64,000 nucleotides of DNA from Lepidodermella squamata (Eukaryota > Animalia > Gastrotricha): assembly GCA_047495785.1 (NCBI GenBank), contig JBLDXI010000046.1, forward strand, positions 1,674,001 to 1,738,000. The letters run 5' to 3'. The translations under genes were made by a program, and so were the position numbers. The notes beneath the pieces are model-generated. The model saw only the letters and a list, made by a program, of their open reading frames with translations, was not told the origin of the DNA and did no database searches. Positions 9,119 to 43,587 of the stretch are shown piece after piece. The first letter of the stretch is position 1, and the number at the start of each line of letters is the position of its first letter.

Positions 9119-11965
9119 ATGTCGTTCGTAACTGTGCTTTATTGTAATGCTAATTCTTTTAACAATAAGATCGACAACTTGCTGATGAAAATTGGCGACG
9201 CTCCTCCGCTTGTTATCATAGTAGTAGAATCCGGCTTCAAAGAGGATAAGAAAAGCGCTAATGAGCTAGAAAGCCTTGGCTACATCTCGTTTACTCAAAA
9301 TAGAGTCGCTCATAAAAGTGGAGGGTCAGCCGGCTTCATTCATCACTCTCTCAATCCTCGCCTTCTTAGCACCTTCTCTTTCGATGGCTATATAGAATGT
9401 GTCACTTGTCTTTGTCAGCTCGATAGAACATCGCTACGGTTGGTTATCGTATATCGGTCACCTAATTCGCCAATGGAATCCATTCGTGATCTCGTGAGTT
9501 ACTTGCAAAAGCAAGTCGATACTACAGAACCCTGCGTAATGGTTGGTGACTTCAACTTGCCAGAGTTCAACTGGGTAACGTTCAAAAATCCTAGCAAATT
9601 ACTTTACTCATGTTTTACCGAGTTCTTTCTGAGAAATAATCTAATCCAATATGTTGATAAACCAACGCGTGGTGATAATATCCTCGACCTAGTCATATCT
9701 AATATTCCTAATATCGTCTCGTGTGTCGAAGTTGATGAACCGCTCGCGGCTTCTTGTGATCATAATGTTGTAAGATTCAGGATGAATGTGGAATTTTGCT
9801 CATCAAGTTCAAAGACTCATGTTTTGAGCGCCTTCAACTTTCGGAAATGCGACTACGTCAACTTTGGGAACTATGTAGATTCGGTAAACTGGCTTGTAAT
9901 GTTCTCAAACTGCAGCATGGACACCTGTTACACACGGTTTCTGCACACAATCTATCGAGGCATTTTGCTATTCGTACCTCGACGGAAGACTCGTAAGCGA
10001 AAGAAAGGGCGAATGCCCTGGGTCAGCGCGGCCATTCAGCGGTTATCAAATAGGAAAAGTCGCCTGTACCGCCAATGGAGAGCAAGTGGGAAATTATCAT
10101 CTGACTTTCTTCGCTATAAAGCGGCCTGCTTAATGTATGATTGTGAATATCGCAAGGCTAGACGAAATTACGAGGAAAATCTGCTCTCTGCTAACAAAAT
10201 TGATGATCTGTACAATTACTTCTCTATGCGTTTCAAAGCTCGCCCAGCGATTCCAGCCCTAGTTTTGAACAACGTTAGCATTGTGGATGATTCAGGTAAG
10301 GCTGAAGCCTTTAGGCAGCAATTCGCTGGAGCCTACAACAATAAGTCATTCTCAGCTACACCGAACTTTAAGGCTGTAAACGACTGTATTCAGACCATAG
10401 ATTTTACTGCTGATTTGGTGTATGATTATGTCTGTCAGATCAAAGAAAAGCCAGTAGGTGGTGTTGATAATCTACCAGCCGTCTTGATAAAAAAACTAGC
10501 TCGATCGCTTTGTACGCCTTTATCTTTGTTATTTCAAATATCATTAGTGACCGGTGAAATTCCTCTTGTGTGGAAATACGCAAATGTGGCTCCTATCTAT
10601 AAGAAGAGTGGTGATGCTTCTTCGGCGGGGAATTACAGACCCGTTAGTCTAACCTGTATTCTATGTAAAGTTCAGGAAACTATTGTAAAAGACAAATTGT
10701 TGATATACTTGAACAGGAATAACTTGATCCCAGATAACCAATTCGGTTTCATATCGCGCAGATGTTGCGAGACGCAGCTCCTCTCTTGTACTAACGACTG
10801 GCTTGGTTTTCTAGACCAACTCCTCGATGTTGTAGTTATTTACCTCGATCTTTCCAAGGCTTTCGATACAGTTCCGATCACATTGTTGTTAGCAAAGCTT
10901 CTTGACATTAACGTTTGTGGCGCGCTCCTTCGCTGGATAAAAGCTTTTCTTTCCGATCGTTTCTTTCGTGTGATTGTCAACTCTGAAGCCTCGGAATGGT
11001 CCCCCGTAACTTCCGGGGTGCCTCAAGGCTCGGTTCTTGGTCCGATATTGTTTCTGATATACACATCGGATGTAAACTCGTGTATTCTGAAATCGATTAT
11101 GAAGTTATTTGCTGATGACACGAAGCTATACAAGGTCATTCGTAATCTCACAGACTGCTTTGAACTTCAGGAAGACTTAGATCGGTTAATCAAATGGTTT
11201 GACGATAACGGATTGTCTGTTAATTCTAAAAAATGTGTCGTACTGAGAATGGGCAAAAATGAATTTCCGTTTCAATTTAGCATCAATGGTGTGGACCTGC
11301 AAGTTGTCAACTCAGTGAAAGATCTCGGTGTTACTATCGATTCAAAGCTATCTTTTTCAGATCATTGTCAGTCTCTCGCAGCGAAATGTAATCGTATTAA
11401 TGGAATGATAGCCAAATCATTTTCGTCTAAGGCCCTCCGATTTAGAGCGTATAAAACATACACATTATCTCGTTTGGACTTCTGTCCAGCCGTGTACTCG
11501 CCTTTTTCATTACAGGATATTGATGACCTTGAATCGGTACAAAAGCGGTTCACAAAAAGACTACTCTATCGAAGCTCGTATCACGAAACGGTCGAGGGTG
11601 CATCTTATGAGGAACGTCTACAGAAATTGGGCTTAACGACGCTAGAGGTTCGCCGCTTCCAACATGACCTCATTCTAATGCATAAAATGTATCAGGGTTG
11701 TATTGATATAAATTTCTCTGACTTTTTTATAATCTCCCGAAACTCTCGCCTTCCTCCTCATTCTGTGACGATGAAAGCGGTTAGAAATAACCTGAACTAT
11801 AAATTTAGCTTCTCCAGGCGCGTGCGTGCTGCGTGGAACCGTCTGCCGTCTTGCGTGGTTAACAACTCTCACAGTGCTTTTTGCAAACATATAAAATTTA
11901 ATTCGCCTTCATTGGTAAACTACGTGACTTCTGTGGTGAGGCGCCAAGAAACAACTTTCTGCTAA
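9119..11965 (+). CDS. LINE ORF2: apurinic endonuclease + reverse transcriptase, intact 948 aa
   Basis: APE motifs (YCNANS, VYRSPN, VGDFNLP, PTRGDNILDLV, CDHNVV); RT motifs (NYRPVSLT, YLDLSKAFD, SGVPQGSVLGP, LFADD); CR1-type C-terminus FSRRVRAAWNRLP. Confidence 0.97.
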   Translation: MSFVTVLYCNANSFNNKIDNLLMKIGDAPPLVIIVVESGFKEDKKSANELESLGYISFTQNRVAHKSGGSAGFIHHSLNPRLLSTFSFDGYIECVTCLCQLDRTSLRLVIVYRSPNSPMESIRDLVSYLQKQVDTTEPCVMVGDFNLPEFNWVTFKNPSKLLYSCFTEFFLRNNLIQYVDKPTRGDNILDLVISNIPNIVSCVEVDEPLAASCDHNVVRFRMNVEFCSSSSKTHVLSAFNFRKCDYVNFGNYVDSVNWLVMFSNCSMDTCYTRFLHTIYRGILLFVPRRKTRKRKKGRMPWVSAAIQRLSNRKSRLYRQWRASGKLSSDFLRYKAACLMYDCEYRKARRNYEENLLSANKIDDLYNYFSMRFKARPAIPALVLNNVSIVDDSGKAEAFRQQFAGAYNNKSFSATPNFKAVNDCIQTIDFTADLVYDYVCQIKEKPVGGVDNLPAVLIKKLARSLCTPLSLLFQISLVTGEIPLVWKYANVAPIYKKSGDASSAGNYRPVSLTCILCKVQETIVKDKLLIYLNRNNLIPDNQFGFISRRCCETQLLSCTNDWLGFLDQLLDVVVIYLDLSKAFDTVPITLLLAKLLDINVCGALLRWIKAFLSDRFFRVIVNSEASEWSPVTSGVPQGSVLGPILFLIYTSDVNSCILKSIMKLFADDTKLYKVIRNLTDCFELQEDLDRLIKWFDDNGLSVNSKKCVVLRMGKNEFPFQFSINGVDLQVVNSVKDLGVTIDSKLSFSDHCQSLAAKCNRINGMIAKSFSSKALRFRAYKTYTLSRLDFCPAVYSPFSLQDIDDLESVQKRFTKRLLYRSSYHETVEGASYEERLQKLGLTTLEVRRFQHDLILMHKMYQGCIDINFSDFFIISRNSRLPPHSVTMKAVRNNLNYKFSFSRRVRAAWNRLPSCVVNNSHSAFCKHIKFNSPSLVNYVTSVVRRQETTFC

Positions 11966-17159: not shown

Positions 17160-18802
17160 CTACTCAAGCAAAGATTTGATCTCGTCCATCAAGGACTGTA
17201 GCGATGCACTCGAGTCCTCGTCATCAGTTGATTCCCCTGAATCATCATCGATCTCACTATCCAAAGACTCTTCTTCCGTCTGTTGGCTATCGTCTTCGTC
17301 GTTCAAAAACGCAGCGTTTATTTGCTGAATAATGGCGACCATTTTTTCTACTGCGATTATGAATCGTTTCAATTCAGATCGATTTCCTGAGTTTAGTACG
17401 GGTCTGCCCCGAAGGTGTGTTAACATGATCTCGCAAATTTTTCTGGCCTCGTTTTTGAGGTGATTGTGAAAAGCCGTCGGATAGAAGCCAGTCGCGTCGA
17501 AATTAATCTCAAGACATTCCACGAAGCGCTCCAGAGATTTAGCGTGGAGCCACGGTTTCGATGTCGCTGAAATGTTCGATAGTAGCTCGCTGAGACCCTC
17601 GTGTTTTAGGGCCAAGCAAAACAAGATCAGTTTCTGAGAACCAAGACAGCTATCTGGTGCATTTTTTAAGTGATGATACGTTTGTGGCGGCATTTCAACT
17701 CGTTCGTACGCCTCAAGCCAAGCGAAGTTTTCCCTCCATTTGACAAGACGCTTCTCAGGCACTGAACATAACATGGGATCAGTTTCTTGTACGCCTAAGA
17801 ATTCCAACTCCTCGTCCTTGATGCGTAAAGATCGGTGCTCGTTACGAAAGCGAATGGCGTTCGATAACTTCATTACCCATGTAGAAGTCTCGAAAACATG
17901 TAGTAAGGACAACAAACAGAGCGAGGAAAGACCGGTCAAAATTGATGTAACGATTGAGGCGGGTGTTCCTATCGAGGTTGGACAACAAAAATAAACAATA
18001 GCTGCTAAAGCTATTGATACAGTAGCTCGAATCAGCCAAATAAAAGCAACAGTACTTTGCACACTGTAGCTAATTCCTAGGCAGCACCAAGAAGCGAAGT
18101 GCTCGCAATTCTCGAATATCAGGCCGTAACCTTTCCGCCCTAACATCGATTCCGCCCGTATAATGGTCGTCTCGCGGCAACATTTAGCTGCCTCTTCAAA
18201 GCTGACCATCGACCTTACACTTTGCTCATTGTTCAATGTTTGTTCATTCCTCCACCATGGCTTGGAATAGTCATCGTACACTTCGTCTGGAGAACAATAA
18301 TAAATGGTCAAACAGCGCAGCCTAGGGATGCTGATGACGTCTGCTAGATCGTCAGGTCGGATCGAAGCATGAATTAGCTTTTTGTCTATCCCCAACAGCC
18401 GAGATAAAAAAGAAGGTTCTCTTTGCTCGTCGTAAAGCGTATCTTTCCCAGCATCTTCTGCATGGCAAATCGGGCAGGCACAAGCCTGATCAGGGCCACT
18501 GTCGTACCTGCAAATCAATTTAAATTTCAGATGATTTTCGACTGGCCTTGTAAATTAACCGGTGAGCTAGTGTAACAGTGCCATTGTTGTTCTGTAAGAC
18601 AACGGCAAAATGTTCGACACCTCGTTGTCTTGCAAATACCACGACGGACCCAGCTTGAAGCAAGTTCTTTACGTCAGCTGAAGACATTACTGATTTGCAT
18701 TTTGGCTGTGAACTGTCACCTTCATAGTGGCTAACATCCCAAGAACCGACACGTTCCCCAATCGGAGAACAAACGTAGCGATATTTTGTATCAATACACA
18801 TT
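17160..18802 (-). CDS. LRAT/PLAAT (HRASLS)-like permuted NlpC/P60 acyltransferase/phospholipase with TM segments and acidic tail
   Basis: GSVVVFARQRGVEHFAV...LAHR joined by intron 18508-18559 to YDSG...; RAESMLGRKGYGLIFENCEHFASWC contains the NCEHF motif; followed by hydrophobic helices. Confidence 0.85.
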
Positions 18803-30326: not shown

Positions 30327-31014
30327 CACTTTAATTACTAGGTTACATCATGTGAGTTTGTAGGTGACCTTTGAGTGAAAGCATCATTATTGCCTGCAAT
30401 AAAGACGAAGAAAGCCGCATGGGTCGCCGCGCCATTCCATTTTTACTATTTATTAGCGCGAAAATGTGTGTCATCGGTTTACATCGCACTTTTCCACGTA
30501 AAGCTTGAAAATTTCGTAGTGTTGTAGGTGAATATTTCATGTCTTGAAAAATAACGGTTGATCAAAAATTAACCGGGTCTTGCTGACACTAATTTTGAAC
30601 TGAGATTAAATTGGATGACAAATATTATGCAAATATTGGAATATTAATGAAGCTTTTCATTTCCTTCTTCTTTCTTCTTGAATTATACAGCGATTAAAAT
30701 ACTGGAACTAAGCCATCTCCAGAAAAATCGCGAGGACACTTGAAAAAAATAAAACTTCAAATAAACTTCAAACACAAGTTAGTTGCTCACACTTTTATTT
30801 GGAAGTAACAAGAGCAGAAGGCTGAGATATTCAAATCACATGACATTTTTCTGATGAAGCGGACGTCAATGGACCATAACGAAATCGGCTATTTGCAGCC
30901 GGTTATTTAGCTTTCAAGTTGCTTATTGAGTCATTTTATTAATAATCACTGGAATAAATAGCATTAAAAATAAATAAATAAAAATAAAAATATTTGCATT
31001 ATTTTTGTTCCGAA

Positions 31015-34000
31015 TTATTTCATAGCTGAAATTCGATCATTCAACTGCTCCATTCCGTGATTTTCAAGCGAAACTGTGTCGGTCACGCCAGGCAAGCGTA
31101 TGGTAGTATGACCAGGCTGACTGGCGCGATCAGTCGATGTCATGCTGATCGGATCGCCAGTCGATTGAACACTTATCACAGGTGATAAATTTGCTTAAAA
31201 CAAGAAAAATTGATTCAAACTATCATTTCAACAAGCGAAACTTACGACGAGCTACGTTCCTATGGCTTTCTGATGACGATAGTTTGGAAAATCCGTCCGG
31301 ATCGTTGAATGCAATCACCTTAATGCCAGCAATTTCTTTAGCTGCATTCGCCGCGATGTTGCCTCCCAAAGAATGTCCCGTTACGACTATTTCTTTGTTA
31401 GGTCTCGTTTCTTTCACAGCTCTTATGAGACTGTTTGCTTCAGATTGCATGAAATTTCGCCCAGTCAGCAAAATCGATACATCGTTTATCAAATCTTTAG
31501 GCTTGGATAACTGCGTACCTCGGAATGAGATGATAACCCGATTTTCGTTCTCGACTACCATCGCCTGGCCATTTGGCATCCTACTGCTTAAATCACGATC
31601 AAGTGTGAAGCCTGAATTTTTCAAATCGTTTTCAACAGCATCCATGCCGCCTTTATCACTTGGCAACTTGTAAGCTTCATCAGCCATTTGAGCGCTTTCT
31701 TTGATCATTTGCCGGTCTTCTGGTGGAATCGCTTGCAGCGCGTTACCCGGGCGCTCAAACAAAAGATTCAACGCCGTTCTTGCACGGATGCCCATCGATA
31801 ATGCATCATGCTCTTCTGTACTTTTGAAGGCATTGCTAACATCAGTGTTAACGGAGCCGATCTGCAGCCTTTCGCCGCCTGATGTGAGAAAATCGCCTGT
31901 CCCGCCGTTTGAAATCGTGGCAGTTGCCGTTGTGGTTTTCTTGTCCTGCGACCAGTTTAGTTGGAGTTGTAGAGCAGGGTCAAAAGGGCTCGGTGCTGTG
32001 AAGCCGAAGGACGTCTCTTTGTAACTCGCCTCCACATTATTGTGTGTTAGCCGATCAATAGTTGGCGCTTTGTCTGGGTTTGAATTCTCCAGAACAGCAC
32101 CTTCTAGATGTAGCTTGCCAATGTGGAGCTGGTCACCGCCACCCTCGCCAATCGTCAGCGAACTTTGCTGATTGATGGTATCGCCACTGCCTTCGGTTCT
32201 GCTAAAGCTTAGATTTAAAGATGAAGTTAAGGCGACTCCAGTTGATTCCTTAGTTTCGTATCCTTTTGAAGTTTCAAAACGAGCATCCTCGATATTGCCC
32301 GATGCGCTGTTCGCATGAATATTGAAGTCACTAGCGTTCAATTGTTGAACATGTCCGAAGTCGAGATGGTTGAAATGCCCTTGGGCATTCACAAAAGTTG
32401 TACCAGACGCTTCTGATTGCTGTAAATTTGCGGATCCTCCCAAAAACGAGTGACTGGTGGCTCCGAAAGAAGCAGAAATGCCAGCCGAAAACCCCGAACT
32501 GCTATGATGCAATTCAGCTCCGCGAATCACGATATTGCGAATGTTGAAGGCGGCATAATCTGCCGTTATGCTAGCCCCGTTCTTCCACACAAAATTGTCA
32601 GCGTTGATTTGTAAATTACGCAGCATTCAGGCTATTGCCAGCTATGAATTGGTCATGCTGCTCTTGGCTGGACATTTTGAAGCCAAAATTAACGGTAGGA
32701 TCGATACCAGCAGTGGTACCAAGTCCAATATTCCGAAGTGCTCCGTCTGGATTCACCAAATTCGTCGCTGCATTGAAAGCCCCGTCAATAACACTGGTTG
32801 CGTTCATGACTTTGCTGTTTCCTAGGTTTCCGACGGCATTTGTAAACTTGGCCGTTGGAAGGCTTTCTAGTAATTTTTGCTTATCCATTACAGCCTGAGC
32901 CAACGGGACCTCGGCGTAAAATCCGAAGTGCTTCTCTTGGCGATCATGATTCAAAATTCGGTCTTCTAAGATTACGTCTTTTGCCGATAAAACACCTAAA
33001 CCAGGCGTCGAGAGACTGCTTCCTTGAAGGAGGATTTCCTCGCCAGCTTCGATGATGAAAGATGAGTTTTCATTTGTCGCCGTAAAATTTGTTCCAACTG
33101 AAAATTCGGTTTTGTCATGAACCGAATGATTTTTAGCGAGGCCGCCTAACCATTTATCACTAGATTGCTGATCAATCCGACCGAGTGCATCGCTGAATCG
33201 AGCCTTTTCTCTGGCATATATACTGCCACCATCTCGAGTTTCAAATTGCGTGCCACGAGAATCCACGTTATTCGCTGAAACAATTAGTTTACCTCCAGTT
33301 TCAACATTCGATGTTTCAATTTGAGTGACTGTGGTAGTTGAATTTTTACTCGCCAAAAAATTGCCAGATTTAGACGTTTGAACTTTGTCTTGGCTATGGA
33401 CATCACTGCGATATGTTCCTTTGTCAGCCATGATGGCCACGTCGCCTTGCCCTCGAATCGTTGAGGCTATTTGAGTGACGTCACCTTCAGGAGATTCGAT
33501 TATTACGCCAAGATTCCGAGTTTCTTCGAATCTCTGGCCATTCCTATCAATCGAGGTTGCAGTATACGCATCACCTTGCCCACCAGAAATCAGAGAACGC
33601 GTATAGGATCCATCAGCTTCAGCGATGCCTCGAATATCAACACCTTTTCTCCCACTTACGTAGGTCTGGTCCGCAATTGACGCTATTGTCGACCCGGCTA
33701 TAGCTATTTTACCGTCGCTGATCATGCTAGTTTTACCATCCGATTCGATGGTCACTTTGCTCGCAGTCAAATTGTCTTTAGCAATAAACATTTGACTACC
33801 GTGTGACTGCGAGACAGCTCCGTTTAAATTCATTGCAGCGCCCGATTCAACCAGACTATGACTCTCTTTGTCCGATGATGTCAGGTGTGTTACCTGACGT
33901 TGGCTGTTGTCGAGACTGTTCTTGTTTGTTTGAAAAATGCCCCCAAGAATGTCACGATGACGATGGACCTCTCTCGTTTTAACTATTTCCTCCATAAAGA

Positions 34001-37000
34001 CGCCTTTTTCGCCGTAGATTTGATGACCATCTTTATCTTTAATCTGGGCAGATGTTGCCTGAAAAACTCCTCCCGCCTTTGCGAAGATAGCTCCACCACT
34101 TAGAAGCGAACTGCCTTCGACATGAGTATCTGTGACCACAGTTGTCGTTTTGACTGCACCAAAGAACGAACTTTTAGTCGATTGATCCGATATGTAACGA
34201 TAGGAGCTGGCTTCAAGTTTGATAGATCCCTTTGCTTCTAAGCTGATATCGCCATCTGCTTTTACGTCGGAATCTTTCAGTTCGATATCGCCATCTCCGC
34301 CATCAATAACAACTCCCATATTGCGAGTGACAGTGTTCCCATCTTTGTCAACTGCCTCGTACTCTTGGCCCTTTCCAGCGCTGATGACAGTATGGTCGTA
34401 CGATCTCATTTCTGAAAATCGACCTTGAATAACTTCTTCGCCCGCGCGACCATAAACGCCAAGGCGACCTCTCACAAATGCTCCACCTTCGCCATGAATT
34501 TTCGTCGCTGTGAGGTCGATTTTTCCATCCGCTGTTGCATTGACCTTACCTTCACTGGCTCGGACGTTAGCACTGACAGCTGTGATATCTCCTTTAGCGG
34601 CTAAATCAATGTCTCCCTTGTCGGAGAGAATTTGAGCACCGCTTTTCGATTCAATGCTACCCTCGTCAGCAGCTAGCGAGACGCCATCGCGACCACTCAC
34701 GCCGTGTAAGACCAAATTTCCTTGCATTGCGTGCACATCAGCTCGACCTTGCTCAGCAGAAAGTTTTCCAGCAACTGATACCCCTTCCCGCCCTTCAAGA
34801 AAAAGGTTGCCATACTGGACAGACAAGTCTTCAACTTCGATACGTCTCGCAGAAACAATTAATTCATGCCAGAAATTAGCTTTGTGCTTCCGCACAAAAT
34901 CTTGGTTAGGAATTTCGAGGTCCAGCGATTTGGTGATTTGAAGATTACGGCATGTTCCAGCGCGGTCAATAATGTCATCCAAATTTTGAAGCTGACCTGT
35001 CACGCTTAATTTCAATGATCCAAAAACCTGCACCGCCCTCTCGCTATTGAGCGACATGTTCACGGCTTTGATGACAGCGCTGTCAACTTTCATACCATCA
35101 GATACCTGAAGGTCAGCTTTAGCCTCCACAAATAGCCGGTCGGCTTGAACATTACTGATAGTGACGTTCTTTCCCTGGATAACTGTCGATTCAGCCGAAA
35201 CACCATTGACCGTTGCCATCTCGGTAGCGTTGATTATAATTTGCTGTTGCGCAGAATTGTTAGTTGCGATGACATTTCGTCCTTCAACAACCGAGTTTTG
35301 AGCCGTAGTATTTGATGCAGTCACATCACCAGACTGCGATTTTACACTCAACTGATTGCCCGCTTCAACATTCTCAACCGTCGCATTGTTCACACTGATT
35401 GATTTGAAATCTTTGTTGGATTTTACACCCTTGACGTAGACCTCATCTCCTTTCACAGATACGTTACCGCCAGCTATTGCCTGCCCGTTCATGTAGACGC
35501 TACTTGAGGATACATTGATATCGTCAAAAGCATAGATTTTGCCTGTATTCACGTAGGAATCACGATAATCTGCCATATAAGTGCCGCTTGCTAAAATATA
35601 TCCGGAGTTATTGCCGGCTATTCCCCGATCAGTGATACTGTGAGCAACGCGGATGCCTCGATGGTCAGAGAATATTGTTGTTTCGTTCATTGAGGGCATG
35701 AAGTTATTTTTTACGAAATCGATCGCAATCTTTGTCCCATCGACTTTGCCTTCTGGGACTGCCTGAGCCTCTACGGCTGCTGTTTCATGCGTCCGTTGCG
35801 CTAGTCTGACTGCTGTATCACATAACGTATAAGCGCCCATGGCTTGAACAACGAGATCAATTATATCGGTTAGCTGCACGGCTGATAATGGCGAAGATTG
35901 CGATTCAAAAGATGCTTTCATGCCATTCAGTTTGACCAAGATAGTAAGAAGAGCTTTAAATGCACTCAAGGCACCAATACCAGACTGGATAATCATCGAC
36001 ACAAATTTTGCTGGGGGGAATAGTTGTTGCATGGTTGTAATGAATGCATTGATTATTTGCCGAGGACTGAGTAACAAATCCGGCGTTGGATAGGTTGGTA
36101 TTCCAGCATGAAAGAGTTCAATCTCCACCACGGCATTTATGGTACGTGAAAACGAAGCAGTTCCGCCCACCAGAAGCAAACATGCGATACCACTTAAATT
36201 CATGGCAGGGCCATGAATAACACCACAGTTAATAAGCGCAAATGCAGTGGATGAAAATAATCGAGAGGCGCATAAAGAGCCGCCGCAATTCACGCCAACA
36301 ATCTGAGCCTTTAATATAATTGATTTTGCGTAGACATTCGATACCAAATTGGCGAAGACCCATGCGTTGATGGACAAGGTCTCACTAGCACGGATCTTGG
36401 GTGACAGCGCGAAGAAAACACCTTTGGCCCGAATGTCAAGGTATTTAGAGTTCAACTTGCCACGGATAAAAATTGTCGGAAAGGTCGAAAACGTTTGACG
36501 GAAATCTTCCGCAAACTTGGCCAAGCGCGACTTGACCTGCTCTGTGCTTTGAATCGATTCATCGGGTTGCCTCTCTTCAATTCGCGACTGGATTGCGATT
36601 GTTTCGCAGCATTCCACATTAGAACCTGAAGCCATATCCAGTGAAACTTGGAAGAAAGCATTGCAAGATTTAGTCTTTGAAATGCATGTTCCCTCGATCT
36701 TAAGCTGTTTTCCAACAAGTGTCAACTGCGTATGGTCTGCTTGAATGGAGCCAGATATCAATAGTTTCCCACTTGAAATGAGCTTAAGGTCAATTTCGGT
36801 GAAAAAAGCGACATTGCCTCCGATACTGATCAGTTCAGATGTAGCTATTTCAATGCAAGCTGTTTTGGTCTTATTCGCAGATCTGCCAGCTGAATTTTCG
36901 TACAACGCGGGCATTACGGCTCGAGAGAATTCATCACCAAGGATGCTTGATACAATATAACGTTTGATTCTCTTGCTTGTGGGGTCATTTTCTACTTTAT

Positions 37001-40000
37001 CCGCCGTTCCATCTTTGTCTTGTTCTTTGCTATCGAGCGTAGTACACGTAAGCTTTGAGTCCGCAAATGTTTCAAATGTTGTTGCTGTTATTCGGGCGCC
37101 AATGTCGAATTGAAGCGTTCCGAAAAGTTTGAGATGAGCATTCGGCGAGATAACAGAGCTCACTAACGTTGATGACGAGTTTTGAGCGATTTCAACAGTG
37201 ATTTCATCGGCACTGCTTGACGTGTCCAATTTACCGATTTGAATGTGATCGATGCCCAGTTTCAAATTAGTGATGCCACTGCTTATTTCGATCTGTTCAA
37301 CAATCAGCGAGCCAGATCCTTTGAATGCGAGTTGAATGCTTGGATTCATTCCAGAAAGTTTAAGCGTGCGGATCATAACTACCCCTACAACTTCAATTGT
37401 AACAACATCACCGGGGCATTTTTCGGGGAGTCCGATTTCAAGGGTAGAGGCAACGAAATCGTTATGAAAAATTAACAAGCGACCCGGCACAATACGGAAG
37501 AATGATTTCGGTAGATCCAATGAACAAGCAAAGTCAAGTTCCGAATTCTGTGGAACCATTAGCACGACTAAATTAGGATGAGGCTCTAGATTAGGCTTGA
37601 AATTGATTTGCTGAGCTTGGGAAGCCGTAAATATTAGGCCTTTAGAAGTTGAGAAGCTTCCTTCAACAGTCACGGAATCTTTATCGTAGAGCTCGAGGTG
37701 GATGCAATCCTCTAAAGAGTCCAGCTTTCCCTTGCTGTTATCGAAACCATTCGCCATGATTCTCAAGGCACACGAATTTGCTTTGATGATACCACAATTT
37801 TTTAACGACTGAAGACATCCGACGGTCAACGATTTTGAAGCCTCCATAGAGCCAGCGTTCTCTACATATTTTGATACGACATAAAGGTTTTCCCCTATCA
37901 TCGATCCAAAGTTTGTAATTGTGTCTTGGCATTTTAGAACCAACTGAGAACCGCCCACCGATGTCAGGCTGCTATGGGCTTCAATCAGTAAGTTAGCAGC
38001 AATCACTTCCAAATGATTGCCACCTTGCATGGAAGCGCCCTTTTCCATCTGGAAAGTTCCCTTCTCCGAATAGAAAAGCGTTTTTGGAGCCATTTCAAAA
38101 ATGCCATTCGCTGTAAGGTTGAAAGACTCACCGAACGATACGGTAAATACTTTGGTCGGAGCAAGAAGGTGAACTTTGCCTGAATGCGTCCATGTTCGCA
38201 CAACTCTAATTTCAATGATAGAACCGTCGAATTCCAAAACACTGTCTTTCTCGGTGATCAGATCGTGGGCAAATAAGTTTATTTCACTGGTTGCATCGCT
38301 TTCCAAAAGCAGTTTTGATGTTTCCTTGAAATGAAGATCTGCCGATGGCGAGGCCAACATGCGCAAAACATTGATTGACTTTTCGATTGTGACAGATGGA
38401 ATACCTCGAAGTTCACCTTTCACCACTAAAGGTCCAGCGACAGTAACTGGGGCTTGTAGGATCAGCTTGCTGTTGTAATCAAGTTCAATTTTGGCGACGA
38501 GATCAACGAATATTTCCGCACCACAGTAAGCTACACCGCGAACCAGCCAGGAAAATTCGCGGACATGAATAAGGCCTAGAACTTCGTTGGTTCCGATGTC
38601 AGCTCTGGTTTCAAGGCAAAGAGATCCAGTTCGGCATTTTATCGAGGCATCCGAGGATTGCTTAAGTGTCAAAGTGGAGAGACGAAGTACGCCGTTCCAT
38701 CTGATGTGGCAACATTTGTTGATAGTTTGACCAACGACAAAAAGATCGCCCCCATAAGCCAGGTTCAAATAAGCCGTCTTTTCAATAAGGAATTCGCCGA
38801 CTTCGAGAGGCTTCTCTGCGCCAAGACCTGCCGTCAGCCAAGTTATTTTTCCATCGATTTTTAGTTGCTCTTCAATAAGACCAAACACGCTGCCTGACAG
38901 CCATTGCCAATGCCGAGGTTGCATTGCCTGTCCAGTGACCTGTAATTCGAGCGTTTTCAGTCCACGAAGCTGAGAGGCGTCTTCAATAGAACCACGAGCA
39001 ACAATTTGCAGATTTTCGGCTTCTATGTAACCATGTTGACGTTCTTTCCAGCATGTCATTTCTGATATCAATCGTGCGTCTTCCATATGCTCATTTTCAG
39101 CGCCAGCCGTCTTTCTTTTTGCCATACTTTTGGCAGCTCGTTTAGCACCGTAGTCGACAATGGCTCCGCTTTCAATAGCCATGTGCACTTGTTTAGGGTT
39201 TCCTTCAAACAAATAAAAATTGAGCTTCTGAAAGTTTCAATTTTTGGAACTTACTTTGTTCTCGAATCACATCACTCAAAGATGATTGCTGAAAGTCCGT
39301 TTGAGGACATGATTCCCTCAAGTTTCGCAAAACAGAGATAGCCTTGTATCCCCGTTCGACTGTATCTCTACCGCCAGCTGATTTAGCCATGTTTTCAAAA
39401 TTAATTGTAAGCTTCTTGCGAGCTCTAACTTCGCCGAAATTAATCAGGTCAGCATCTATGTTCAAATGACCGCTTTCGCAACTGAAGAAAAGTTTACCAT
39501 CTGTGCCGATTCGGAAATTCCCGGCAGGTACCGTGATACAGCCGGCAGATAATTCCAATGAGCCATCCAACACGACTTCATCGTCACATGTAAAAGAAGC
39601 GCCACCCTGAAGTAACATCTGCGAATCGGCCATGATTCTGATGCTCTTCCCTGCAGTTAGGGTTAGAAAGCCAGAGATAACAGAACGATTTCTACCAAGG
39701 AACACCAAATTATTGACAAAGGCCGTTAAATCTCCATCTCTAAGGCATGCGAAGTCAACCCTGAGAGAGGCAGCTTGCGCCTTTAACGTTTCATTCTTCA
39801 ATAAGGCCCGGTGAATTATGAGCGTGTTGGTATTTTGATTCAATTCTAATACAAGCGGCGAGCTTGTTCGGCAGTTTAACGATATTACAAGCGCCACGCC
39901 TTTTTTGCTCCATTTCCAGTCTCCTGTAAAACAGATTTTTGGGCTTGAAATTGAAAAATTCAACAGGACGGACAAAAGTTATACACAGCAGACAAGACTT

Positions 40001-40275
40001 GGCGCCTTTAAAACTTAATGAAATTCAACTAAAATCTTCACGGAAATAGCTCAGTTTCTCATATTTAGGCCTGTGTTTTTAAGGCCCTCTAAATGTCACG
40101 AAATGAATGTTGAAGACATCGAGAATTCCGTTTAAAAGTTACAGGTAATAAATAAAACAAACTAACCTTTGATGCCATTTTTTGACAATTCGAGAGCGGA
40201 TGAGTTATTCGATCTTGGATTTGTAACAGTAACATGGGCAGAATCGACTAATTTCAACTCCGTTTGCAGCTTCAT
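31015..40275 (-). CDS. Giant (~2950 aa) filamentous-haemagglutinin/CdiA-like repeat protein with C-terminal class-3 lipase domain, intron-containing
   Basis: Model exons 40275-40167, 39923-39255, 39202-32620, 32570-31246, 31193-31015 (8865 nt, frame-consistent if a 49-nt intron at 32571-32619 is used; otherwise a 1-nt frameshift there). Beta-helix-like G/N/S/V/I-rich repeats; FHA-2-like SKSGNFLASKNSTTTVTQIETSNVETGGKLIVSA; lipase ISFRGT...DLIND...VTGHSLGGNIA...AFN...GDPIS...NHGM. Confidence 0.8.
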
Positions 40276-41586
40276 AGCTGTAAACTCTCAGCAAATAATG
40301 AAGCGAAATCACCGGGCGCTCGAAATAGTTGTGTAGACGAGATAACGCTGAAAATTCAAGATGAGTCATCGACATTCACCTGGTAATTCCTATGCGTTAT
40401 CTATTGTATTTTCTCTGGAAATTTTTGCGCTATCGTATGTTTTTTCTCTGGTAATCGCTATCACTAATAGATATCACTCTAGAAAAGCCGCTATCACCTA
40501 CCTATTAATTATAACCCATTTATTATGAAATTTCTCATTCCTACCGCAGCGCGAAGATTTCAAGATAAGGTGTGATTCAGCCTCATCCGCTTAATATGAT
40601 TCAGGTTAATATGAATCAGCAGAGAAGCCGCGAGGGAGACACGTCAAAAAGCCCAAGGATGTCTTCCTGTTGACCACAGCAACACCACTAGTCAACGAAC
40701 CGTTATCTATCGTGGCACGGCAGCGTGGAACAGCGCAAAACCGACTTCATCCGGCAAATGATAACTCGTCATAAAGCACGCGTCAAGCTGCCTACGTCGT
40801 CGAATTCGCGAAAGAACTACTCGAAGATATTATTTTATTAGATCCGTAATCTATTTTTCTAATTTATTTTTCTACTCCTTTGTGCCACTTGGCCCGTGTA
40901 AAACATCGCTACAGCGGTGACTCGGGTGCTCGAATCAAAAATGAAATAATATTCTGAACAGTCATAATTGATGAATATGAAGAGAATACTGCGCATTGGC
41001 CTGTCAGGTGTGAAAGCAGGCCGACCGCAATTCTCGACCGTTTTCTCCACGTTTTCTCGACCGCGACTCTTCGGCGGGTATTTTTCTACAAAACGCATCA
41101 AACCGCGTCGAACTCTGTCGAAAACGTCGCATCACCTAGCGACAATAGGTAGCGATTTTAGCGAATGGATACAATTTTGACTACCTCGGTCCCATTCGAA
41201 ATTGCATGTTCTATGTTTTATTCGTTGCTCGACGCTGAAATTATCTAATTTTTGCAAAGATTTGTCTCGATTTTGTCTCGATTTTCGAGTGTAAAGGACA
41301 CCTTGAAAATCGCATCATTGCAGTAAGATCTAACATTGGTCGCTCCTCGAACATTTTCTCGATTATTAGCCACTCGAATCAAAGTATAGCAAGGAAATGT
41401 CTCCGGCTGCTGAAAATTCTTTGCAAACGTATTAATCAGCCAAAAGTACGAAACGGCTTTACAGTAAAAGAAACTTTATTGCGCTGGCAAAACACGTTTA
41501 ACATAGATAAAAAACACATGAGAAAGATCATTGGTTTATAGGTAATTGAAATGAGTTCTTGTTCTTGTTCTTCGCTTCCCAGTTTT

Positions 41587-43587
41587 TCAACTCGGCAACA
41601 CGTCATGCAGACGAAGCAGCTGCTTCATGGCATTCAAGGTGGATTCACGCGGTGGATGTGCGATATTCACATTCCCATCATTGTGGCACATCCACTCGGC
41701 TAGACGGGCGAGCAGGGTGAAGAAAACCGGCTGGTGGTGACTAGAAGACTTGACCGGTTGTTGAGATTCAATCAGTAACAGGACATTGAGAACAGCGTCC
41801 AAGACCAAGCCATTCAACATGTCGTCATTCGCCTCGATAGCCGTGGGCTTCCGTCGACTCAGTGAGGCAAGACCGATGTGGGACAGAACTCCGATGACAA
41901 TGGGCTGGCAGTGGCACGGGTGGTTGAAGAACCGCTCCATCGCACTGCTCGACAGGGTCACTATTCGAGTCGTCATTTGAACGAAAGCGAAGCAAACGCC
42001 ACGTTGATTCGCCTGTAATCGTTCATTTAGCGGCAGAAAACCAAACCAGTACGACAGAGCCGAAGCCAGAACGAATAAAGTGCAGTCAGTTGAGTTCGTT
42101 CTCAAATCGATAATGTTGAAATGCGAGGCAGCAGCTGCGAGTGCGACTAGGGCTGACTCAAATAAACGACTGAAAACGAACGCTGACGGGTCGAAGGCGA
42201 TTGAAGGCGTAATAGCCTTGTTGCTGCTCGGAAAAGCGCTTTCGATTGCGCCGTTGCCCAGTAAGCCCGGCAAAATCCGATCAAAAACCTAAAAAAAAAA
42301 CATTTCAGAATTTTTAAGGTGGATTTTTTAATCTCACCTGACGCAGGGTCCGTTGAAAATTTCCGAATAAATCATCCTGCCCAGTTGAGACCGGGTTCTT
42401 TCTAAGGGGCAGATGCATAAAAATTGCAGCAACGAGGCGCAAGGCTGCACATTGAATTTCAGTTCGAGCCAAGATCAGCTTGAAAACATTTGCATCCTCG
42501 AGAAATTCAGCGATTTTTTCCAGGGAATCAACGATCGCTTTCAGTCGATCGTCCGAGATTGCGGCAACATAACCGAGGCCACTATTTTGTTCGGCATGAG
42601 CGAGAAAACGAGTGAGAACATCGAATAATTTGACAAAATCCTCGCTGATTGACTTGGCCTCGATTTCTCCGTTCTTATTGTTGACAATCAATTTAGCGTG
42701 GTCAAGTACCCGATTCAGTTGTTTACTTGAAGCTGGTAGCGATACCAAGTCGCAGTTGAATGCTCGCTTCGTGACAGGACAACGCAGACTAGCAACAGGT
42801 CGTTGATCATTGCCTGATTCTCGGAGGCGAATACTGCCGGCATTGGGTAAAAACCACTTTCGATCGCAATCGCGAGGAGCCTGGGGTTCAATTTTAACCT
42901 GATTAACCGGCTCTTCATTCGGAATGGGTGAAGCTCGAAACGCATTAGCATGCCGGTTTGGGATATTCGGGTTCTTTTCGTTGAAATAATTCGCAATGCT
43001 GTTCCCTTGTTGCTTGACAGTTGCCTGTTTTTGTGCCTGTGAGGCTATCACTGAATTGTCGAGGCTAATCCGAGCATTTTTCGCCTGTTGAAGCTCGTGA
43101 TCAGCGAACTGCAACTGACTCTTCAAACTCCGCAGCTGCCCCTCTAAATCATCGACTTTCCTCTTGTAGTTCTATTTAAATGAAAGGTAAGGAATCTCAG
43201 CGGATGAAACGTAAACGAAATGAACCTGATTAAGTTGATCAATCGATTTGTGCATTTCCATGCGAGCAGCATCAGCCTCTTTCTGCTTAGATAACACTTG
43301 CTGGCGTAGCATTGCAGCCTCGCCTGTCAGAATAGTTTCCTTGTCTTGAAGCTGTTCAATTTGACGTTTGAAGTCTTCGACAGTCTGTCGCAAATTATCG
43401 ACATCGACCGGCGCAGTATTTTCATTTCTGAATCGATACGAGCAACAGATACTGAAGCAACAACAATGAATAAAATTACTAACTTGACATCCATTGGTTT
43501 GCCAAACGCCTGTGATTCGATCATGTCCAACTGTGACAGGAACTGGTCAGGCAGAACCATGTCATCGTCATCATCGTACATGTTCAT
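41587..43587 (-). CDS. ATRIP: ATR-interacting protein-like, multi-exon
   Basis: N-terminal DDDD..DQFLSQLDMIESQAF; coiled coil GEAAMLRQ...LRSLKSQLQFADHEL; C-terminal CHCQPIVIGVL. All resemble ATRIP signatures from memory. Confidence 0.7.

Follow-up and report, generated by a model that had tools for sequence, protein, structure and literature searches.

Stalks of bacterial TpsA exoproteins project from the membrane, and the second type of filamentous haemagglutinin (FHA) repeat that they carry, FHA-2, has been implicated in engaging the membrane of the target. The FHA-2 family Fil_haemagg_2 is also reported for ExlA (PMC5705979). Bacterial polymorphic-toxin systems are documented sources of single toxin domains in eukaryotes, and in animals the teneurins, a group of type II membrane proteins, stem from YD/RHS polymorphic toxins of bacteria (Zhang et al., 2012; PMC3482391). 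Full-text searches of the literature found transfers of toxin domains, but no FHA/CdiA-type stalk with an enzyme tip in an animal. The gene described here is a candidate for such a protein and lies on the minus strand of a 64,000-nucleotide stretch of the genome of the gastrotrich Lepidodermella squamata (GCA_047495785.1, contig JBLDXI010000046.1, positions 1,674,001 to 1,738,000 of the forward strand); this whole stretch is referred to as the window, and positions are given in its coordinates. With a probability of roughly 0.68, the locus is an invertebrate nuclear gene of a small and rare family descended from a bacterial filamentous-haemagglutinin protein of the TpsA/CdiA type.

Protein architecture and family

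From the N to the C terminus, the protein is predicted to comprise a TpsA-like beta-helix, a new hydrophobic helical module of ~330 aa, an FHA-2 beta-helix of ~900 aa, a beta-rich linker of ~300 aa and a lipase-like hydrolase of ~200 aa. Homology of the second half to bacterial Fil_haemagg_2 repeats is supported by profile and by modelled fold. An AlphaFold model of aa 1150-2198 of the largest open reading frame (ORF), to which residue numbers refer throughout (model mee442846fb2d; predicted local distance difference test, pLDDT, 76.8; predicted template-modelling score, pTM, 0.68), forms one long beta-helix. Its nearest ESM Atlas model belongs to a cluster carrying the two-partner secretion (TPS) domain and Fil_haemagg_2 (TM scores 0.53/0.62, 611 residues aligned, root-mean-square deviation 3.9). 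Among the Atlas matches listed for this half, all ten are bacterial clusters of FHA type or similar, eight with Fil_haemagg_2 and/or DUF637 (some with PT-VENN too), one with TPS only and one from an S-layer family without a Pfam domain. Compared with PDB representatives, the model matches the TpsA adhesin EtpA best (Z 21.6, 688 residues aligned), followed by the EtpA secretion domain (Z 20.6), the autotransporter Vag8 (19.9) and HxuA (18.4), with FHA itself at 15.0. At the profile level, where the Pfam cut-off for Fil_haemagg_2 is 22 bits, the window's own best match (Table 1) is accompanied by scores of 45.2 bits (E 1.5e-11), 51.7 bits (E 1.5e-13) and 24.5 bits in the homologues P0001, P0006 and P0008, respectively.

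The first half was modelled less confidently as a whole (m53d8a2f0ff4c, aa 1-1150; pLDDT 51.7), with values of 70-90 over aa ~270-680, which again form a beta-helix. This helix, which has no Pfam match, resembles in the PDB the secretion domains of HMW1 (Z 19.0) and EtpA (18.1), then HxuA (16.8) and FHA (16.2); its top ESM Atlas row is a cluster with TPS and Fil_haemagg, and aa 273-575 are modelled with a fold similar to that of TPS-domain structures. For both halves, the top PDB rows are mostly TpsA proteins, plus the autotransporter Vag8. Language-model neighbours of all three thirds of the protein are likewise bacterial Fil_haemagg or Fil_haemagg_2 clusters, with scores of 0.83-0.89 that serve as leads only. 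The TPS profile (PF05860) has no match in any piece of the gene at E<=0.1, and the genome-wide search gave none either, a weak negative, as the control was also without a match. A Foldseek search of the PDB gave no match at E<=0.001, and a profile of the FHA-2 region found chance matches only among PDB sequences. The beta-helical body proposed in an earlier sequence-only reading is thus borne out by both models, and of the FHA-1/FHA-2 layout that it proposed, the FHA-2 part stands on profile and fold, while for FHA-1 (PF05594) the likeness is confined to the fold level, with no profile match in the window gene and 18.8 bits (E 0.29) in its paralogue C9.

The hydrophobic helical segment that had been claimed between the two beta-helical parts is present as well. 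No other part of the family is as well conserved as this middle module, with 43% identity to C9 and 36% to P0001. Its helices are low-confidence predictions, and its hydropathy peaks in these two relatives are strong enough for membrane helices. A membrane role can be put forward as a hypothesis only, because the P0008 version is homologous but more polar. The module belongs to no Pfam family and no counterpart was found: a metagenome scan with the module and a word-indexed protein search with aa 900-1260 returned no match, and its ESM Atlas neighbours, at 0.83, are leads only. A single furin-type R-I-K-R site is located at 36960-36971 (aa 748-751), ~150 aa before the module, and is not conserved in C9 or P0001.

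Beyond the stalk follows the linker, for which no Pfam family, including PT-VENN (PF04829) and DUF637 (PF04830), was found at E<=1 over its 299 aa; a metagenome scan with the alignment of linker plus lipase gave no match. The tail is supported by profile searches as a class-3 lipase-like hydrolase of ~200 aa, scoring 31.4 bits with Lipase_3 (PF01764; cut-off 22) and 27.8 bits with the Mbeg1-like family (PF11187; cut-off 21.1), and matching the NCBIfam SA1320 family at E 6.8e-10. The match to the profile lies mostly in the elbow region, and the nearest PDB sequences are fungal class-3 lipases of weak similarity. A Ser/Asp/His triad can be assigned by motif (GHSLGG in exon 4, GDP and NHG in the last exon), with equivalents in the paralogue C31. 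The lipase end of the earlier reading is therefore recovered, out of frame with the stalk in the window copy.

In the 121-Mb genome the family has three members, the window copy, C9 and C31. They include what the sequence-only reading had suggested looking for, paralogues with the same scaffold and other C-termini: C9 has no lipase, and C31 combines an anchor, a shorter stalk and a lipase. C9 (~419-426 kb; L004:3039-9932, minus strand) is a 2298-aa ORF with 28% identity to the window protein over 1954 aa; it has the full stalk and the middle module, lacks the linker, the lipase and the first two introns of the window gene, and comes to a natural end ~45 aa past the position of the break described below. 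A GH3-family gene 450 nt downstream of C9 on the same strand was considered as a swapped tip and rejected, as it begins with an ATG and a signal anchor of its own. C31 (926380-932200; loci L013, L014 and L015) was found through its lipase. It starts with a charged tail, followed by one strong transmembrane helix that forms a type II anchor, and continues with ~930 aa of stalk, the same linker and a lipase that is in frame. Its stalk, shorter than that of the window protein, matches the FHA-2 profile at E 7.3e-17, its canonical introns lie at positions other than those of the window gene, and furin-type sites occur ~45 aa after the transmembrane helix (RKRR) and within the stalk (KRRKR). The type II anchor of C31, a cytoplasmic tail plus signal-anchor helix, is absent from the window gene.

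Gene model and the break between stalk and lipase

The three long minus-strand ORFs on which the sequence-only reading was built are present at 39205-39975, 32616-39212 (2198 aa) and 31223-32626 (467 aa), together with its short exons. Joined in a five-exon model (40275-40167, 39923-39255, 39202-32620, 32570-31246 and 31193-31015), they give 8865 nt with one terminal stop, and this total of 8865 nt or 2954 aa is reached only when the segment 32571-32619 is removed. Neither a signal peptide nor a hydrophobic leader or transmembrane segment was found at the N terminus encoded by exon 1, in line with the earlier observation that a signal peptide and a nearby TpsB/CdiB gene are missing, to which the missing TPS domain can be added. 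An acceptor-like motif, tttacag, stands 2 nt upstream of the ATG (within 40276-40290) and could represent the acceptor of a trans-splice or of an intron in the 5' untranslated region.

Three of the four introns that had been claimed stand, on different grounds. Intron 1 is supported because the protein runs collinear across the junction in the intronless C9, with a local score of 75 compared with 35.8 +/- 5.9 for shuffled sequences (maximum 62, n=300). Intron 2 is supported at the level of sequence features: the reading frame continues across it, its donor is GTAAGT, its acceptor is rich in T, and its content of guanine plus cytosine (GC) is low at 27%. Two public sequencing runs, X1 from 2015 and X2 from 2024, were compared with the window over 30700-36600, and in one X1 contig the last intron is spliced out exactly (31193 to 31246; CT..AC on the plus strand, anchor of 25 nt). 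The ~50-nt intron size that had been noted for neighbouring host genes agrees with introns of ~50-60 nt in the adjacent HSP110 gene.

Table 1. Features of the gene, in window coordinates
Feature	Position	Strand	Description
Whole gene model	31015-40275	minus	Three long ORFs plus two short exons, located as in the sequence-only reading
Exon 1	40167-40275	minus	ATG at 40275; 36 codons + 1 nt; collinear with intronless paralogue C9
Intron 1	39924-40166	minus	243 nt, GTTAGT..TTTTACAG, 34% GC
Exon 2	39255-39923	minus	Start of N-terminal beta-rich region
Intron 2	39203-39254	minus	52 nt, GTAAGT..TTTGAAG, 27% GC
Exon 3, protein body	32616-39202	minus	Open frame stops at TAA 32616-32618
N-terminal right-handed beta-helix	37113-38465	minus	aa ~250-700, confidently modelled part
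Hydrophobic, mostly helical middle module	35493-36500	minus	aa ~905-1240, ~330 aa, predicted between the two beta-helices
C-terminal beta-helix, FHA-2 type	32955-35684	minus	aa ~1177-2086 (modelled)
Best Fil_haemagg_2 (PF13332) match	34167-34361	minus	25.1 bits in six-frame search; 20.1 bits, E 7.5e-4, in hmmscan of whole ORF
Frame break	32616-32626	minus	11-nt overlap of largest ORF (stop TAA 32616-32618) and lipase ORF (ATG 32626, in-frame TGA just before), offset +1
Possible intron of the sequence-only reading	32571-32619	minus	49 nt, GT..AG, 41% GC; coding by homology
Beta-rich linker	31727-32626	minus	~300 aa; position of pre-toxin region; common to C31 and P0001
Lipase domain, first part	31246-31564	minus	GHSLGG nucleophile elbow, exon 4
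Last intron	31194-31245	minus	52 nt, GTAAGT..TTTTAAG, 27% GC
Last exon	31015-31193	minus	Lipase Asp (GDP) and His (NHG) motifs, stop codon

The fourth, possible intron, 32571-32619, is not confirmed, and the single protein of ~2950 aa that depends on it is not supported: the 16 codons within this segment align to coding sequence of C9, C31 and P0001, each of which reads through in one continuous frame. Because the segment is coding in these three relatives, the body and the lipase of the window copy are separated by a +1 break, and in the assembly the 2,453-aa stalk lies in a frame separate from that of the linker and lipase. The 1.5 kb downstream of the break is wholly open and keeps the catalytic motifs, and the break should therefore have arisen very recently, be an allelic variant, or be overcome through a weak splice or a frameshift. 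As assembled, the window copy would yield a stalk without a lipase, unless the poor 49-nt splice or a frameshift joins the two, and it is slightly more likely than not that the locus makes no stalk-lipase fusion at present.

How the break is to be explained can be weighed on the same evidence. That a small indel recently severed the lipase, making the window copy a very young pseudogene or disabled allele which encodes a lipase-less stalk or decays, falls only a little short of an even chance: the +1 offset sits inside the 11-nt overlap precisely where the three relatives stay in frame, and the sequence is identical in X1 and X2, neither of which reports an indel relative to the window. Against it stand the 8.9 kb that is otherwise free of stops and shifts and the intact downstream stretch with its motifs, and the agreement between X1 and X2 carries less weight in that the two may share one strain and contigs hide minor alleles. 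An unlikely though still sizeable alternative is that 32571-32619 is a real, recently evolved and possibly alternative intron, whose removal would give a stalk-lipase protein of 2,954 aa and whose retention a lipase-less stalk. The GT..AG ends, the host-like length of 49 nt and the exactly restored frame would fit such an intron, the lipase ORF of 467 aa is fully intact, as is the last exon, which argues for ongoing use, and C9 shows that a stalk ending near the break is a natural form; the segment nevertheless encodes 16 residues conserved in C9, C31 and P0001, and its G-rich acceptor without a T tract and its 41% GC are unlike the three good introns. In addition, X1 pieces appear, from their geometry and the summed bin depth, to cover ~32557-32630 and hence both borders unspliced, where the true intron nearby is spliced, which would mean that the segment is retained in X1. 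A programmed +1 shift of the ribosome at the stop codon, of the kind known from antizyme, would likewise join stalk and lipase and suits an offset of +1 exactly at the stop with read-on sequence collinear with the homologues, but it is very improbable given its very low prior, the lack of a stable downstream RNA structure (z -0.35) and the lack of any recognised shift-prone motif.

Relatives, origin and genomic setting

An exhaustive phmmer search with aa 1250-2198 in 1.84 billion representative proteins returned nine matches only. The closest long one is P0001 (E 5.6e-101, 32% identity), encoded on a 15-kb contig (L006) beside a C2-domain gene, and the closest fragments are P0002-P0005 at 48-59% identity. 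P0008 (L007:10001-21859) is a single ORF of 3952 aa that lies in a metagenome contig of 1.6 Mb between stretches nearly devoid of ORFs, and carries ~700 aa of helical repeats (~70 aa each) in place of the lipase. Because of the C2-domain neighbour and the nearly ORF-free flanks, respectively, the contigs of P0001 and P0008 look eukaryotic; P0006 and P0009 come from short contigs of ambiguous origin. No match was obtained in a word-indexed protein search with aa 1250-2198, in GTDB genome scans with P0009 and P0006, or in tblastn searches of plasmids with a piece of the window gene and P0006. Short family fragments of 35-40% identity on opposite strands ~1.6 kb apart (L009-L012) turn up in contigs of more than one metagenome and resemble decayed copies from a different organism.

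Because all other FHA-2 clusters returned are bacterial and the lipase type is mainly bacterial (Mbeg1-like, SA1320), transfer from bacteria, as the sequence-only reading had proposed, appears to be the economical explanation, judged from the range of these families, and the eukaryote-like relatives suggest that the acquisition is old or that the gene spread among eukaryotes. It is also conceivable that a lineage-specific eukaryotic beta-helix family converged on FHA repeats and has no bacterial ancestry, which would sit well with closest relatives on eukaryote-like contigs and with a bacterial donor not having been found. This is nevertheless rather improbable in view of the Fil_haemagg_2 scores of P0001 and P0006, clearly above threshold, the bacterial FHA clusters that are the Atlas neighbours of all three parts, and the mostly bacterial type of the lipase. 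Bacterial contamination or misassembly, for which nothing speaks beyond the bacterial-type domains themselves, has a negligible probability: the gene has spliceosomal introns and a GC content matching its flanks, a 130-kb X2 contig, which may be the assembly's own source, spans the compared stretch, and the paralogues lie on two other multi-megabase contigs. Animal genes stand on both sides in the window, the surroundings comprising POU, HSP110, NDK, fucosyltransferase, C2H2 zinc-finger, ankyrin, PLP/M6, EGF and ATRIP-like genes and a LINE; the best named matches of the HSP110 protein reach 47% identity. Contamination is thus effectively excluded, and the gene lies in animal DNA, as the sequence-only reading had held.

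Descent from a bacterial TpsA/CdiA-type protein, the preferred reading, has to be set against several findings. The window's own Fil_haemagg_2 score is marginal, the gene has no TPS, FHA-1, PT-VENN or DUF637 profile match, and beta-helices are generically alike, with tailspikes and lyases at Z 14-18 in the same lists. Exhaustive phmmer found no bacterial relative beyond the two ambiguous short contigs, and neither a donor nor a bacterial sister group was found, so that the direction of transfer follows from family range and not from a tree. The window protein has neither a signal peptide nor an N-terminal anchor, which leaves its export unexplained, and its lipase is out of frame, so that this copy may be decaying. 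Finally, the classification of X1 as RNA is a tool's guess, and the spliced contig is a single one with a short anchor.

As to the wider setting, the ORFs upstream of the gene at 41587-43126 were considered as the source of an N-terminal anchor and rejected, since they form a separate gene. TpsB/CdiB (PF03865) was not found in the genome, a weak negative given that the control was also without a match. Elsewhere in the window, 9119-11965 holds an intact-looking non-LTR retrotransposon ORF (948 aa, endonuclease and reverse transcriptase), and the 452-aa ORF at 17160-18518 encodes a domain of LRAT/NlpC-P60 type (PF04970, E 2.2e-8).

Candidate function and comparison with known systems

If CdiA, ShlA and ExlA and the type II anchor of C31 are taken as guides, the stalk may project from, or insert into, a membrane and would present its C-terminal lipase to, or deliver it into, the membranes of microbes, prey or competitors, where the lipase would act on target lipids. 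C31 would solve the problem of export by its type II anchor, and the window and C9 proteins may use the hydrophobic module instead. The analysis itself shows the structure of the gene, the folds, the homology, the paralogues and the frame break; topology, export route, target and toxicity are suggestions. A family of surface-displayed or shed effectors of attack or defence is a plausible role that comes near to, without reaching, an even chance; an adhesive or structural role without toxicity is doubtful, and both an intracellular, membrane-associated role and some other role are unlikely. A bolder and more improbable proposal is a eukaryotic form of contact-dependent inhibition, in which FHA-type stalks held in the animal's own membranes, that of C31 by its type II anchor and those of the window and C9 proteins by the conserved hydrophobic module, would deliver a lipase into microbes or foreign cells on contact. 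The module would then be a self-contained device for export or membrane translocation in place of TpsB, and the frame break would act as a regulated switch between armed and unarmed forms.

Like CdiA and BcpA, the TpsA exoproteins of contact-dependent inhibition (type Vb secretion), the window protein has a giant stalk of two beta-helical blocks, of which the second consists of Fil_haemagg_2 repeats, followed by a linker and a variable C-terminal enzyme domain, offset by +1 from the stalk in the window copy, with family members that differ in their C-terminal ends. It differs from them in that a Sec signal, a TPS domain, an FHA-1 profile match, PT-VENN, DUF637, a CdiB partner and an immunity gene are all missing as far as sequence allows them to be recognised, in the hydrophobic helical module that occupies the place of the receptor-binding and YP regions of CdiA, and in its spliceosomal introns and animal genome. 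The cytolysins ShlA, HpmA and ExlA and the adhesins EtpA, HMW1 and HxuA include the best structural matches (EtpA Z 21.6, HMW1 19.0, HxuA 16.7-18.4), a likeness that holds at fold level and to secretion domains and that comes with no sign here of pore formation or adhesion. With class-3 lipases, Mbeg1-like (DUF2974) and SA1320 hydrolases and Tox-AB-hydrolase tips, the tail has in common the GHSLGG elbow and motifs for Asp and His, and its Pfam scores exceed the cut-offs; unlike these, it is short, at ~200 aa, and matches mainly in the elbow region. Because several defining features fail, the window protein is not classed as a TpsA, yet judged by analogy it would work most like CdiA or a TpsA of the ShlA type.

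The closest precedent in animals is that of the teneurins, in which a whole bacterial toxin scaffold with a C-terminal toxin-like domain was domesticated, and whose type II topology is also that of C31. In contrast to them, the family described here has an FHA beta-helix rather than a YD shell, the window copy lacks an N-terminal anchor, and the lipase keeps its catalytic motifs, whereas the toxin domain of teneurins is inactive. The three paralogues, taken with the frame break, show that the tip has been both gained and lost. If functional, the family would offer a natural experiment in export without TpsB, with a membrane anchor in one paralogue and a new hydrophobic module in two, as well as a possible new class of animal effectors of defence or attack, and it would be, next to the teneurins, a second and independent example of a bacterial scaffold for toxin delivery taken over by an animal.

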